This document shows, piece by piece, positions 37,096 to 43,879 of a stretch of DNA of 64,000 bases. A program made the translations under genes and the position numbers. Numbering within the stretch: position 1 is the stretch's first letter; each line of letters starts with the position of its first letter. The DNA lies in IMG/VR virus record IMGVR_UViG_3300037882_003354, positions 1 to 64,000 of that record; one strand, given 5' to 3'. The notes beneath the pieces are model-generated. The model was given only the letters and a program-made list of their open reading frames with translations, searched no databases and was not told the DNA's origin.

Positions 37096-37332
37096 TCAAT
37101 ATAATTTTTTAGGCAGCTCTTGTTCCCGCAATTGTTTGAGCCAGCGGGCTCGGGCAGCACCCTTTTTACGTTTACGTTCAGTGGTGGGCTTCTCATAGAA
37201 CATGCCGGATCTGACCACCTCCAGGGTGCCGTTGTCTTCAATCAATTGCTTGAATTTACGCATGGCCACCGTGAGTGGTAGATCCCCCACCGTTATGCTT
37301 GATCCGCGTGTGTTGATTTTATTCCGCTTCAT
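37096..37332 (-). CDS. rpsU: Ribosomal protein bS21
   Basis: AMRKFK...[16 protein letters not shown]. Confidence 0.88.
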
Positions 37333-38548
37333 CGTCTGAATTTTCTTCGAATGTCATGGCAGCTGGCTGGCCAGTCACAGTGTCTTTGTTTACACAGATG
37401 CTTTTAAGACCCCGCTCCACTAGATTGACGGCATCAAATTGATAGGGCAACAGCGCACGCTCTATGATGTTCTTCAGGCCACGAGCATTGGTCTTCAATT
37501 CCTTGGCACGTTCTGCTATGTGAGTCAAGGCTGACTCTTCAAAAATTAGATCAATACCATCCAGCTCAAACATGTATTGATACTGGCGGATCAGACTGTT
37601 CTTGGGTTCTTTCAGCACGGTCACCAGATCGTCCACAGACAGTTCATCCACATTGGTTATCAGACCAAAACGTCCAACAAATTCTGGAATGAAACCAAAC
37701 TGTATGATGTCCTTGGTGGTCACCTGCTGATAAACTTTACTGTTGTTTTCCAAGTTGGCCACTGATGCATGAAAACCAATGCTGCGACTTTCCAGACGCT
37801 TGCTGATGATTTTGTCCAGGCCCACAAATGCACCACCACAGATGAACAGCATGTTGCGAGTGTCAATTTCTTGCATGTCACCACCGGGATGTTTGCGCTT
37901 GCCCGAATGCGGTACTCTGACAATGCCTCCCTCGATCATTTTAAGCAGGGCCTGCTGTACACCCTCTCCACTGACGTCGCGAGTGATGCTCATGTTTTCA
38001 CCCTTGCGAGCAATCTTGTCGATTTCGTCGATGTAAACAATGCCTCGGCTGGCCCTTTCAACGTCACCGTCGGCAGCGTTGATCAATCTGAGTATGATGC
38101 TTTCCACATCGTCGCCCACATAGCCGGCTTCTGTGATGCCAGTGGCGTCGCAGATGGCGAATGGTAGATCCAGGTAGTCGGCTATCTTTCTGGCCATGAG
38201 AGTTTTCCCGCAGCCAGTGGGCCCCAACAGCAACACGTTGGTTTTTTCCAACTCAATGTCCTTGCTGGGATTGTTGATGCGTTTGAAATGCTGGCTCACA
38301 GCCACACTGAGCACTGTCTTGGCATCTTCTTGGCCCACCACATAGTCGTCCAGGTAGTCCTTGATGGCAGTGGGATTCAGGGTCCGTTTCTCTGTGGGGT
38401 CGGCTTTACCTTTTTCATCATCCAGGATGCCCACACACAGACTGATACAATCGTTACAAATGGCGGCGTGCTCGCCCACGATTAGTTTTTCCACGTCTTC
38501 TTTGCTTTTTCCGCAAAAATCACACACATGATTAAGTTGTTTAGCCAC
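37319..38548 (-). CDS. clpX: Clp protease ATP-binding subunit
   Basis: CDFCGK zinc-binding domain; GPTGCGKT; IDEIDK; [12 protein letters not shown]; RKHP; IGF loop. Confidence 0.97.
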
Positions 38549-40709: not shown

Positions 40710-40737
40710 AAAAATAGGACCCGAAGGTCCTATTTTA
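40710..40737. terminator. Bidirectional intrinsic terminator
   Basis: AAAATAGGACC-CGAA-GGTCCTATTTT. Confidence 0.85.
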
Positions 40738-40756: not shown

Positions 40757-41203
40757 TCAGAAAGAATATTTAAGACCAGCGGTGATTCGATTGCCGTTAA
40801 AATCACGCACTCGTGATTGGCCACGCTGATAGGAATAATCCAAAGTGGCTTTGACTTGGTCAAACACTGGAATTTCAGCACCAACACCCACCAGTGCAGC
40901 GCCACCATCAGACACGATGCCGTTTTCAAGATATGCAAAACCCGCCTTGACCGACAGTTCAACTGGTCCAACTTTTGTCACCTGGTAACTGCCCAGCAGG
41001 CTCCAGCGACTCTGATCATTGTCACCAGTGGTGCTACGATCAAAACCACCAGTTACGCCAAATGCACCGAACCGCTCACCCAGAGTGACACCGACGGAAT
41101 TGCGTTCACTACCAAAATCTCGAGCAGCAGTCACGCCCATTTCCAGTGCGCTGGCAGCAGTTGCCGACAGTGCGATTAACGATGCAATTACAATTTTCTT
41201 CAT
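40757..41203 (-). CDS. Outer-membrane beta-barrel protein (OmpA/Ail-like)
   Basis: Sec signal; alternating beta strands; C-terminal GLKYSF. Confidence 0.85.
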   Translation of the reverse strand: MKKIVIASLIALSATAASALEMGVTAARDFGSERNSVGVTLGERFGAFGVTGGFDRSTTGDNDQSRWSLLGSYQVTKVGPVELSVKAGFAYLENGIVSDGGAALVGVGAEIPVFDQVKATLDYSYQRGQSRVRDFNGNRITAGLKYSF

Positions 41204-41344: not shown

Positions 41345-41378
41345 ATAATAACATGCAGTTGTTACACCATTGTTAAAC
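41345..41378 (-). promoter_or_regulatory. Pho-box-like promoter
   Basis: GTTTAAC-AATG-GTGTAAC-10 nt-TATTAT, matching PhoB promoter geometry. Confidence 0.5.
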
Positions 41379-42368
41379 GAGATTTTCCTTGAAGATGTTC
41401 CAGCAATGGTCCCAACTCCATTGCCGACTGTGCCGCTCCACCTGCTGTCTGTCCAGGGTCAGGCACTGATTGATGGCCCTGCGGAGATCCTGGTCTAGAC
41501 ATCCAGTGACACCTGACTCAATGATGTCCAGAGGGCCAGGCACAGGATATGCAGCCACCGGTGTACCCACTGCAAGTGCCTCGATGATCACCACCCCAAA
41601 CGTATCGTGGCGGCTGGTGAACACAAATACATCTGCCTGTGCGTAATACCGTGCCAGGCTGGTGCCTGTTTTTGCTCCGGTAAAAATAACATCGGGGTAA
41701 CGACTTTTCAGCTGGTTCAAGTATGGACCATCGCCCACCACTATCTTGGTGGCACCCGGATAGTACAGATTGCAGAAGTCATCCAGACCCTTCTCCTTGC
41801 TGATGCGGCCCACGCTGAGTAATATGGGACGGCCAGCCACTGTGGTGCCGCGCAGACTACTCTGAAATACATCACGATCCACACCCCGCGTCCAGGGAAT
41901 GATGTCACCGTCAAATCCGTGAGATCTGAGATCATTGACCATGGTCTGGGTGGTGGTCAGTACCCGTCCACTATGCTTGTGAAACCAGCGCACATACCAA
42001 TAGGTCATGAACATGGGAATGCCATAGATCTTTTTTAGGAATTCGGGAAATTTAGTATGATAGGAAGTGTTATAGCGCCGGCCACACAGATCCATCCAGC
42101 AACGTGCCGCCAGGCCAATAGGCCCCTCCGTAGCAATATGTATGTGATCAGCCCCCACCGCCGCAATCTTCTTGCCAATGCGCCAGGGCCAACTGAGTTT
42201 AACTTCAGGATAACCAGGGGTACTAATATGAGGGAACTGCCGGGGATCAAGATAAACAATATCGTACCCGTCATGACCTGCGCATATCTCAATGTTTTTG
42301 AACGTGGTGACAACGCCATTTAGTTGGTCAGGTAGATTGTCTGTTATTACTAGTATCTTTTTTCTCAT
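41373..42368 (-). CDS. GT4 glycosyltransferase, Agt-like diacylglycerol glycosyltransferase
   Basis: ITD...QLNGVVTT, YPEVKL, HIATEGPIG, YHTKFPE, RGVD, VGRISKEK, DTFGVVIIEALA. Confidence 0.85.
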   Translation of the reverse strand: MRKKILVITDNLPDQLNGVVTTFKNIEICAGHDGYDIVYLDPRQFPHISTPGYPEVKLSWPWRIGKKIAAVGADHIHIATEGPIGLAARCWMDLCGRRYNTSYHTKFPEFLKKIYGIPMFMTYWYVRWFHKHSGRVLTTTQTMVNDLRSHGFDGDIIPWTRGVDRDVFQSSLRGTTVAGRPILLSVGRISKEKGLDDFCNLYYPGATKIVVGDGPYLNQLKSRYPDVIFTGAKTGTSLARYYAQADVFVFTSRHDTFGVVIIEALAVGTPVAAYPVPGPLDIIESGVTGCLDQDLRRAINQCLTLDRQQVERHSRQWSWDHCWNIFKENLV

Positions 42369-43125
42369 CTTGTTCTGTTGTCCAAGTTATGATTTCCCAT
42401 GTGCCGTCATGATGTTCCACCAGGGCTGTGCATGATTCCACCCAGTCGCCATCATTCATGTAGGTGACGCCGTCTATTTCTTTTATTTCAGCATGGTGTA
42501 TGTGACCACAGATGACCCCATCATATCCACGCTTCTTGCAGTAGGCAGCCAGATTTTTTTCAAATCGGAATATGAAATCCACTGCCTTCTTCACACGTTG
42601 CTTGAGATACTGGCTCAGGCTCCAGTAACCAAATCCCAGGCGATGACGCAGCCAATTGAATTTGGTATTGAAACTCAGCATGAAATCGTAGGCTTTGTCG
42701 CCCAGGAACACCAGCCAGGGCGCCAGTCTGGTGATGCCATCAAATAAATCTCCGTGGGTCACCAGATAATGCTTGCCGTCCAGTCCAATATGCTCCACTT
42801 GGTTGGCTATTTCGATATTGCCAAATCCAATGTCATAGGGCATGAGCGGTCTTAAGAATTCATCGTGGTTACCGGCAATATAAATTACTCGGGTGCCGCG
42901 CTTGGAATGTCCAAGTATGCGTCGAACCACATTGGTGTGGCTTTGTTTCCATCGCCATTTGTTTTGTTGAATCTTCCAAATGTCCAGGATGTCGCCCACC
43001 AGATAAAGCGTTTCGCAGGTGTTGTGTTTGAGAAAGTTGTTGAGTTTGTCTGCTTGACAATCTCTTGTACCTAAGTGCACATCACTGATTGCTATTGTCC
43101 TATATTTTTTTTTATTTTTTGGCAT
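42328..43125 (-). CDS. LpxH-family metallophosphoesterase, PlcP-like phospholipase C
   Basis: ISDVHLG, LVGDILD.W, GNHDE, HGDLFD, CGHIH, NDGDWVESCTALVE. Confidence 0.85.
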   Translation of the reverse strand: MPKNKKKYRTIAISDVHLGTRDCQADKLNNFLKHNTCETLYLVGDILDIWKIQQNKWRWKQSHTNVVRRILGHSKRGTRVIYIAGNHDEFLRPLMPYDIGFGNIEIANQVEHIGLDGKHYLVTHGDLFDGITRLAPWLVFLGDKAYDFMLSFNTKFNWLRHRLGFGYWSLSQYLKQRVKKAVDFIFRFEKNLAAYCKKRGYDGVICGHIHHAEIKEIDGVTYMNDGDWVESCTALVEHHDGTWEIITWTTEQDEKKDTSNNRQST

Positions 43126-43192
43126 AAATAAAGTTGTAGTTCGCGATACTGGAAATATCCAACTACCCTAATGCTTGAAAGGAGCAGTCAGC

Positions 43193-43879
43193 ATGAGTAT
43201 TTATAAAGAAGTTCGTTACAGGAATATTACAACTAACGGACATTATATCTATGCCTATTTAAGAGAAGACGGCACACCTTATTATATAGGTAAAGGGCAA
43301 CGATATAGAGCCTGGATGAATCATCGAGTGAATAACAAGGGTGTTCATACACCCACCGATTTATTTCGTGTAGTTATTATGGAAGAAAATCTAACCGACC
43401 TTGGAGCATCTGCTTTAGAAAGATTTTACATAAGATGGTATGGTCGTAAAGATTTAGGAACAGGAACACTACACAATAGGACCGATGGTGGTGATGGCGG
43501 TAGCAATGACTCGGAGGAAACTCGTCGCAAAAAAGCAAGGCCAGGAAAACTAAACGGAATGTATGGTAAGAAGCGTCCGCCAGAACTCATTGCCAAATTA
43601 GTTGCTGCAAGTGTTGCTAATTCAAAAGGTAAAACTTACGAAGAAATATACGGAGAAGAGCGGGCGCAGGAAATAAAACAGGCTCGTTCAGTAGCACTAC
43701 AAAAACCTAAGTCTGATGCTCACAAAGAAAAGTGTAGAGAAAACGGTATGAAGGGTGCCTTAAAGATTGGCGCCACACGTAAAGGAAAAACGGCAGAAGA
43801 AATCTACGGCCCAGAAAAAGCACGTTCTATGGTTGAAAAAAGATTAGCAACATTAGCCAAGAAAAGTACTACTAAATGA
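43193..43879 (+). CDS. GIY-YIG-like homing endonuclease
   Basis: [30 protein letters not shown]; [10 protein letters not shown] x2. Confidence 0.85.

Follow-up and report, generated by a model that had tools for sequence, protein, structure and literature searches.

Phosphorus limits growth in many aquatic environments, and a large double-stranded DNA phage needs a considerable amount of it. Does a 322-kb freshwater jumbo phage encode the means to draw phosphorus from the membrane of its host? The question is raised by two overlapping genes in a stretch of 64,000 nucleotides (hereafter the window), which corresponds to bases 1-64000 of a 322,512-bp virus record with direct terminal repeats, rated 100% complete. 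A preliminary description read them as an LpxH-family metallophosphoesterase and a GT4 glycosyltransferase resembling PlcP and Agt, the bacterial enzymes that replace membrane phospholipids with phosphorus-free glycolipids, and proposed that the phage frees phospholipid phosphorus while keeping the membrane intact. Our analyses confirmed the two genes and support this interpretation, although the activities of the enzymes are predicted from sequence and structure models only.

Organization of the locus

Both open reading frames begin with ATG and lie on the minus strand, together with the following features:

43215-43231 (-): Pho-box-like direct repeat TGTAAT-N5-TGTAAC with an 11-nt period, 90-106 nt upstream of the PlcP-like ATG, proposed as a PhoB site
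43199-43205 (-): -10-like element TATAAAT, 9 nt downstream of the repeat
42328-43125 (-): PlcP-like metallophosphoesterase, 265 aa, predicted to be a Mn-dependent phospholipase C releasing diacylglycerol and a phosphorylated head group
42328-42368 (-): 41-nt overlap of the two reading frames
41373-42368 (-): Agt-like GT4 glycosyltransferase, 331 aa, predicted to transfer a UDP-sugar to diacylglycerol, giving glucosyl- or glucuronosyl-DAG
40757-41203 (-): small outer-membrane beta-barrel protein of Gram-negative type with a signal peptide, 148 aa
40711-40736 (strand not assigned): palindromic, terminator-like hairpin of 11 pairs flanked by A and T runs, the likely end of the minus-strand transcription unit

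Pfam models Metallophos and Metallophos_2 matched the first protein, and Glyco_transf_4 and Glycos_transf_1 (GT4) the second, all above the curated cut-offs. The overlap suggests one transcript and coupled translation; similar overlaps (GT match starting 10-37 nt before the end of the PlcP match) occur in about 24 of the 50 viral loci with a GT4, while P. aeruginosa plcP and agt1 overlap by 4 nt. The arrangement is the "type 2" plcP-agt layout (PMC4796936). The outer-membrane protein, which gave weak hits to YfaZ and OMP_b-brl, may lie on the same transcript but has its own promoter-like site at 41269-41240, and its homologues are not consistently linked to the pair in relatives (3 of 80 loci, at varying distances), hence we did not accept it as part of the module. 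The window also holds tail-fibre genes and a ribonucleotide reductase.

The esterase groups with PlcP and not with LpxH

The designation "LpxH-family" holds only loosely. The best NCBIfam hits of the esterase, like the source annotations, are LpxH, but the scores were 46 bits on NF003743 (cut-off 134) and 33.5-35 bits on TIGR01854 (cut-off 190), whereas true LpxH from two gammaproteobacterial genomes that also carry a separate PlcP-like plus GT4 pair scored 288 and 220 bits. Grouping with characterized PlcP to the exclusion of LpxH is the criterion used in the literature (PMC9239053), and in our tree LpxH (E. coli plus these two genomes) was split off by a branch with a support value of 100, while the window protein and 24 viral relatives formed one clade (96) inside the group holding the orthologues of P. 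aeruginosa PA3219 and S. meliloti SMc00171. These references, recovered from PLSDB records and recognized by their gene neighbours (cyaB and sinR/sinI), are strain orthologues of the characterized proteins rather than the exact proteins that were assayed. A profile built from cellular PlcP members only gave 402 bits for the window protein and 25-43 bits for true LpxH. Identity was 54% to the PA3219 orthologue, 47% to the SMc00171 orthologue and 18.5% to E. coli LpxH, the first value being higher than the 45% shared by the PA3219 and SMc00171 orthologues.

The seven metal ligands (D15, H17, D45, N86, H124, H208, and H210) are all kept and align with those of LpxH and of both PlcP orthologues. 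In motif III the window protein has GNHD, where LpxH has GNRD; this discriminator was derived here, with His (H87 in the window protein) present in 60 of 60 PlcP-group rows and Arg in all 3 LpxH rows. The structural model has an LpxH-type, calcineurin-like fold with a helical lid at residues 130-199, and matches LpxH-lipid X structures. A single-sequence search of the PDB gave no hit at E < 0.01, and LpxH appeared only when a profile was used.

The glycosyltransferase carries the Agt/GTcp signature

The second protein is close in length to the SAR11 Agt, GTcp (331 against 334 aa), and its model (mean pLDDT 91.7) shows the two Rossmann-like halves of a GT-B fold. It keeps all 14 residues whose mutation abolishes (or, for Thr257, alters) GTcp activity: G18, G82, G85, H104, T160, R161, R188, K193, D255, T256, F257, G258, E263, and W319. 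Among these, H104 and D255 correspond to the catalytic pair His104-Asp256, in which Asp replaces the usual GT4 Glu, and T160, R161, and W319 to the diacylglycerol-binding residues Thr162, Arg163, and Trp320. All 24 cellular GTs beside plcP have this Asp, and the 4 outgroup GT4s have Glu. The UDP-sugar motifs GRVAxEKN and FPSxTDTFG and the Gly-rich motif read GRISKEKG, FTSRHDTFG, and TEGPIG in the window protein, the substitutions falling at positions other than those shown to matter.

In the tree the viral GTs formed one clade (99) nested among the cellular GTs beside plcP, including the orthologue of P. aeruginosa Agt1 (PA3218), while WaaG and WaaB lay on very long outgroup branches. The Agt-like profile gave 384 bits for the window GT, against 34 and 23 for E. 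coli WaaG and WaaB and 23-39 for these two together with one GT4 paralogue, although a second GT4 paralogue, from Kordiimonas, reached 171 bits. The best fold matches use diacylglycerol or another glycerolipid as acceptor (MgtA, SQD2, and alpha-MGlcDAG synthases, TM 0.85-0.91); five of the top six use a diacylglycerol-based lipid, and no LPS glycosyltransferase appeared among the 30 best.

Occurrence and conservation of the pair in viruses

At least 589 IMG/VR contigs carry this PlcP. In 79 of the 80 best viral loci a glycosyltransferase follows it, a GT4 in 50 and a short GT2/GT21-like enzyme in 29, and the partner type switches at least 12 times on the PlcP tree. Esterase followed by GT4 was found in 37 of 80 cellular loci, while no homologue of the GT2/GT21-like partner was detected in the cellular plcP loci that we retrieved. 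Against viral relatives dN was 0.07-0.15; synonymous sites were saturated, allowing only an upper-bound argument, but the genes are under constraint. Evidence of transcription is thin, as a single metatranscriptome contig was identical over 197 nt (42845-43041) and could derive from carried-over DNA.

More distant homologues occur in Pelagibacter phage Mosig EXVC030M, where the gene is described as a "putative UDP-2,3-diacylglucosamine hydrolase," and in Synechococcus phage S-SRM01, both annotated as an LPS enzyme in the deposited records. They belong to the same PlcP-like family, with 371 and 203 bits on the cellular PlcP profile and 50 and 38% identity, respectively, but lie outside the freshwater viral clade and are not followed by a glycosyltransferase. 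In Mosig the gene is next to pstS, and its host HTCC1062 lacks plcP (PMC4796936).

Link to phosphate

The repeat at 43215-43231 is the only match to TGT[AC]A[CT]-N5-TGT[AC]A[CT] in the whole 322,512-bp genome on either strand; shuffled sequences gave a mean of 0.48. The same motif lies within 150 nt upstream of the PlcP-like gene in 19 of 64 distinct viral upstream regions, or 35 of 64 with at most one mismatch, against 0 and 0.6% in shuffles, and it precedes true pstS genes in three related phage loci (L085, L086, and L134). The position of the repeat ahead of a -10-like element appears to correspond to the layout of PhoB-dependent promoters, in which a Pho box replaces the -35 element about 10 bp before the -10. 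The motif is nonetheless a variant, TGTAAY rather than TGTCAT, and its core repeat (TGTMAY-N5-TGTMAY) was derived from relatives: the strict E. coli consensus CTGTCATNNNNCTGTCAT, with up to 3 mismatches, gave 4 matches in the window, fewer than the 9.2 expected by chance, and none near the pair. It also sits further from the start codon (-106) than in relatives (-26 to -50), inside the 5' end of a homing-endonuclease reading frame on the other strand, and the regions upstream of the Mosig and S-SRM01 genes do not show it (best matches with 3-4 mismatches). PhoB binding is proposed rather than demonstrated.

Gene neighbourhoods point in the same direction. A true PstS (424 bits) is encoded two genes downstream of the pair in L085, pstS lies within 2 kb in four other viral loci, and in two loci (L088 and L089) the esterase sits inside the RNR/ThyX cluster for dNTP synthesis. 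The phage studied here has one phoH, at about 286 kb, but no pstS and no UDP-glucose dehydrogenase, so it depends on host enzymes for UDP-sugars.

A probable phage copy of the lipid-remodelling pathway

Taken together, the two genes are best explained as a phage copy of the bacterial PlcP-Agt lipid-remodelling pathway, a reading to which we assign a probability of roughly 0.7. The pathway is known from S. meliloti (SMc00171), Phaeobacter MED193, Pelagibacter HTCC7211 (PlcP and GTcp), P. aeruginosa (PA3219/PA3218), B. cenocepacia, and M. trichosporium OB3b, with which the phage locus shares the two protein families, the gene order, the overlapping or adjacent arrangement, conserved catalytic residues and a Pho-box-like promoter motif. 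It differs in being carried by a lytic-type jumbo phage, in the separate clades formed by the viral sequences, in the Pho-box variant, in the replacement of the GT4 by a GT2/GT21-like enzyme in sister phages, and in the absence of an adjacent dagK, unlike the Burkholderia plcP-agt-dagK operon.

The first enzyme, a binuclear-metal phosphoesterase with a lipid-holding helical lid, is predicted to cut inner-membrane phospholipids (PE, PG, or PC) into diacylglycerol and a phosphorylated head group, and the second, a retaining GT-B glycosyltransferase of the Agt/GTcp clade, to put glucose or glucuronate from host UDP-sugars on that diacylglycerol, so that the membrane keeps its lipid mass while losing phosphorus. 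PlcP releases phospho-head groups and not free phosphate; host enzymes would have to convert them into usable phosphate, which would then feed nucleotide synthesis. The promoter motif suggests that the host's PhoB switches the module on when the infected cell is short of phosphate, as reported for cyanophage pstS and phoA. Those genes, which also appear to be host-derived and controlled through PhoB/PhoR, act on external phosphate by uptake and ester hydrolysis, whereas this module would draw on an internal store. The formation of diacylglycerol and glycolipid, the flow of lipid phosphorus into phage DNA, any benefit to the phage and the effect on superinfection put forward in the preliminary description remain inferences.

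Alternatively, the same enzymes could serve to change envelope properties, with surface or membrane glycolipids blocking superinfecting phages, altering receptors or providing resistance to antimicrobial peptides or grazers, and phosphorus release as a side effect. An outer-membrane protein gene lies just downstream, PlcP-Agt remodelling has been linked to phage adsorption and polymyxin resistance in P. aeruginosa (PMC9804370; PMC8528852), and the near-universal pairing with a glycosyltransferase despite its varying type shows that the glycolipid product matters. However, the motif shared with pstS, the adjacency to pstS and the position inside dNTP-synthesis clusters all point to phosphorus economy, and the outer-membrane protein is not consistently linked to the pair; we regard this purpose as unlikely to be the main one, even though the two are not mutually exclusive.

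Less probable still is that the esterase acts as a lysis or takeover aid, or that the pair is a recently captured piece of host DNA with no role in the phage. Phospholipases can damage membranes, and the proteins are 50-60% identical to cellular ones, but a partner that consumes diacylglycerol is almost always present, which argues for rebuilding the membrane rather than destroying it, while the viral sequences form their own deep clades, are under strong purifying selection, occur in hundreds of viral contigs, and reach a best cellular identity of only about 62%. Finally, a true LpxH with an LPS glycosyltransferase, altering lipid A or core LPS synthesis, is the reading of automatic annotation and agrees with the closest solved folds and with catalogues of viral metabolic genes, but it is contradicted by the profile scores, the trees, the GNHD motif and the coexistence of true LpxH with this pair in some genomes.

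Implications for phage biology

One copy of this genome holds 645,024 phosphate groups (2 x 322,512). As an E. coli-sized cell probably contains on the order of 10^7 phospholipid molecules, and small planktonic cells fewer, membrane lipid could pay for a meaningful share of a small burst of jumbo phage genomes. The phage phosphate genes known so far (pstS, phoA, and phoH) act on uptake or have unclear roles, and no paper linking plcP or agt to phages was found in the literature searched, which did not cover subscription journals. A virus-encoded switch from phospholipid to glycolipid would be a different route, using an internal store while keeping the membrane intact until lysis.

It is somewhat more likely than not that freshwater jumbo phages and, more distantly, pelagiphages and cyanophages carry a PhoB-controlled module of this kind, built from a conserved PlcP plus an exchangeable glycosyltransferase, that diverts lipid phosphorus into phage DNA. 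If so, the viral lpxH (K03269) entries filed under LPS biosynthesis in surveys of viral metabolic genes, which may be this family, may need to be moved to phosphorus scavenging. It would also mean that part of the glycolipid signal read as bacterial phosphorus stress in lakes and oceans may come from infected cells, and that infection may change the host surface in ways that affect other phages, grazers and antimicrobial peptides.

Genomic setting of the pair

The genes of interest are two overlapping open reading frames on the minus strand, which share 41 nt:

42328-43125 (-), metallophosphoesterase, 265 aa
41373-42368 (-), GT4 glycosyltransferase (GT), 331 aa

Pfam assigned the first to the calcineurin-like metallophosphoesterases and the second to the GT4 glycosyltransferases, in both cases above the curated cut-offs. 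The window is the first 64 kb of a 322,512-bp virus record with direct terminal repeats, rated complete, and also carries collagen-like tail-fibre genes and a class I ribonucleotide reductase (RNR); the setting is therefore a tailed jumbo phage. Sequencing runs holding this stretch are freshwater and lake metagenomes from at least 14 studies. Further features encoded in the window are:

43175-43879 (+), GIY-YIG-type homing endonuclease ORF (phrog_15526 and phrog_314), divergent from and directly upstream of the esterase gene
40757-41203 (-), small outer-membrane beta-barrel protein with a signal peptide, 148 aa, with weak hits to YfaZ and OMP_b-brl, just downstream of the pair
40711-40736, strong palindromic, terminator-like hairpin following the latter gene
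37319-38548 (-), full-length ClpX homologue with the zinc finger, AAA_2 and the small D2 domain

One lake-metagenome contig joins 43084 to 44032 and skips 947 bp, so some relatives probably lack the endonuclease, whose homing target may be the conserved 5' part of the esterase gene. Summed metagenome contig depth rises 7- to 20-fold over 42872-43038, a 167-nt stretch encoding the conserved N-terminal part of the esterase, and many short contigs diverge on both sides of it. Many related variants therefore coexist in the same lakes.

Affiliation of the esterase

Automatic annotation names the esterase LpxH, nonetheless the evidence points to PlcP. The protein scored 46 and 35 bits on the two LpxH equivalog models, against cut-offs of 134 and 190; a single-sequence search of the PDB found no LpxH structure, and a family profile found LpxH only at E = 1e-12 to 1e-7. 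Two gammaproteobacterial genomes hold a genuine LpxH (288 and 220 bits) and, elsewhere, the PlcP-like gene with a GT4 next to it, indicating that the two are paralogues.

Named references were taken from records in a plasmid collection. In a P. aeruginosa record (NZ_CP137508.1) the homologue is followed by a GT and then by cyaB, which is the PA3219-PA3218-PA3217 layout described in PMC8528852, while in a S. meliloti record (CP090106.1) it lies near the sinR/sinI quorum-sensing genes, a position that, given the likely locus tags of sinI (SMc00168) and sinR (SMc00170), should be that of SMc00171. Both records look like mislabelled replicons, as the 3.7-Mb S. meliloti record labelled "plasmid pSymB" carries chromosomal genes (sinR/sinI), and P. 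aeruginosa "plasmids" of 96-167 kb carry the chromosomal PA3217-PA3219 region. The two orthologues are 45% identical to each other, in agreement with the published 46%, and the phage esterase is 54% identical to the first and 47% to the second, but only 18.5% to E. coli LpxH.

In a maximum-likelihood tree of 63 proteins, LpxH was separated by a branch with support of 100, and the phage esterase and 24 viral relatives formed one clade (support 96) inside the PlcP group. A profile built only from cellular PlcP-group proteins gave the phage esterase 402 bits and true LpxH 25-43 bits. All seven metal ligands are kept, and motif III reads GNHD in all 60 PlcP-group rows of the alignment and GNRD in LpxH. 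The AlphaFold model (mean pLDDT 83) has the LpxH-type core plus a two-helix insertion at residues 130-199, and its nearest solved structures are LpxH-lipid X complexes, making a lipid substrate plausible.

Affiliation of the glycosyltransferase

The biochemical study of the SAR11 enzyme GTcp defines the Agt clade by a His104-Asp256 pair, with Asp replacing the usual GT4 Glu, by the motifs GRVAxEKN and FPSxTDTFG, by a Gly-rich motif, and by residues Thr162, Arg163 and Trp320, which bind diacylglycerol. The phage GT has G18, G82, G85, H104, T160, R161, R188, K193, D255, T256, F257, G258, E263 and W319; every residue whose mutation abolished (or, for Thr257, altered) GTcp activity is therefore present. 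In the tree the viral GTs formed one clade (support 99), nested among the cellular GTs that sit beside plcP, including the P. aeruginosa Agt1 orthologue. On a profile of those cellular GTs the phage GT scored 384 bits, against 34 for E. coli WaaG and 23 for WaaB. The model (mean pLDDT 91.7) best matches enzymes that glycosylate diacylglycerol or other glycerolipids, namely MgtA, plant SQD2 and the alpha-monoglucosyl-DAG synthases.

Interestingly, a well-supported viral subclade of 15 rows (support 99; the GT4 genes of loci L084, L085, L108, L110, L111, L117, L121, L127, L134, L142, L156, L160, L167, L171 and L181) has Glu at the catalytic position, where the phage GT and all 24 cellular GTs beside plcP have Asp. 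The D256E change cut the activity of GTcp by more than 90%. These viral enzymes may have changed activity or donor preference. Overall, neither of the two phage proteins groups with true LpxH or with LPS glycosyltransferases, an outcome that the preliminary description had named as refuting its PlcP-Agt interpretation.

Distribution and conservation of the module

The closest database relatives, with about 80% identity for the esterase and 61-75% for the GT, lie on other phage-like contigs of 260-350 kb from lakes. Of the 80 best loci, 79 have a glycosyltransferase just downstream on the same strand, 50 being GT4 and 29 a short GT2 that also matches Pfam Glyco_transf_21, while the remaining locus ends 300 bp after the esterase. 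The GT2 partner (208-238 aa; L088:6328-6954 and 28 other viral loci among L112-L185) matches in this the family of the processive Pgt lipid glycosyltransferases; no homologue turned up in the cellular plcP loci retrieved. On the viral PlcP tree the partner type changes at least 12 times, and at least 6 of these changes are forced by well-supported branches. The conserved unit is therefore PlcP plus a glycosyltransferase, which fits a diacylglycerol-consuming second step better than any one sugar chemistry. Against relatives the esterase has dN of 0.07-0.15 with saturated synonymous sites, meaning long residence in phages under purifying selection and not a recent capture.

Among cells, the same order of esterase and then GT4 holds in 37 of 80 loci, mostly Alphaproteobacteria, and in all ten low-GC or small-genome loci retrieved. 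One low-GC (30%) genome of about 1.6 Mb (L100, G214:C1:136882-152907) carries two plcP-agt pairs, convergently oriented and about 4.5 kb apart.

Link to phosphate

While the strict E. coli Pho-box consensus gave nothing near the pair, the upstream regions of the viral relatives share the core direct repeat TGT[AC]A[CT]-N5-TGT[AC]A[CT]. The repeat is exact in 19 of 64 distinct upstream regions and present with at most one mismatch in 35 of 64, compared to 0 and 0.6% in shuffles, and it is always in the orientation of the gene, mostly 26-50 nt before the estimated start. In the whole 322.5-kb genome of this phage the pattern occurs exactly once on either strand (shuffles gave a mean of 0.48 per genome):

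43215-43231 (-), Pho-box-like direct repeat, 90-106 nt upstream of the PlcP-like ATG

Nine nucleotides downstream lies TATAAAT, a spacing that would be expected of PhoB-dependent promoters. The motif is, however, a variant of the Pho box, and in this phage it overlaps the start of the homing-endonuclease ORF on the other strand. The same motif sits 82 nt before a bona fide pstS in the viral loci L085 and L086 (424 bits on the PstS equivalog) and 143 nt before pstS in L134. In three further loci (L176, L177, L180: 4104-4131), three Pho-box-like repeats in tandem at 11-nt spacing lie upstream of a 215-aa ORF (L177:4195-4842) without Pfam match, a candidate phosphate-regulated phage gene of unknown function.

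Other links to phosphate are positional. The pstS gene lies two genes downstream of the pair in L085, within 2 kb upstream in four viral loci, and directly upstream in one cellular locus. The 202-aa protein between the viral pair and pstS in L085 (7741-8349, -) has a faint Mpo1-like hit, and the P. aeruginosa plcP-agt1 locus also has an annotated Mpo1-like protein two genes away (L106:7432-7749, -), which may be a coincidence. Pelagibacter phage Mosig has the esterase next to, and divergent from, pstS, and its host HTCC1062 is reported to lack plcP (PMC4796936). In another phage lineage (L088 and L089) the PlcP-like gene sits inside the dNTP-synthesis cluster, between the RNR and ThyX genes: ThyX, the RNR large subunit and a BPL_N/GATase-like gene lie before it, and the GT2, an Fe-superoxide dismutase, an Fe-S assembly protein, thioredoxin, the RNR small subunit and QueC lie after it.

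Proposed mechanism and significance

Although the evidence is at the level of sequence only and no viral member has been assayed, the most likely reading is that a phosphate-starved infected cell, through PhoB, transcribes the two overlapping genes, PlcP cleaves inner-membrane phospholipids to diacylglycerol and a phospho-head group, the Agt-like enzyme rebuilds a glycolipid from host UDP-sugars, and the released phosphorus enters nucleotide synthesis. The phage genome has no pstS and no UDP-glucose dehydrogenase, and the RNA evidence is a single short contig. A role in changing the cell surface, for example superinfection exclusion or resistance to peptides or grazers, is compatible with the same chemistry and could be the main benefit or an additional one; an effect on superinfection, also put forward in the preliminary description, is neither supported nor contradicted by the present data.

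The enzyme families and the bacterial pathway are well known, and so are phage phosphate-stress genes, whereas we did not find this pathway described as a phage-borne module in the literature that could be searched. Published surveys of viral metabolic genes list a viral "lpxH" (K03269) under LPS biosynthesis, including in a Lake Baikal viral metatranscriptome, and in light of the above results those calls may belong to this family. The module is abundant and carries a testable regulatory signal, and it would add an internal phosphorus source to the ways phages reshape host metabolism.
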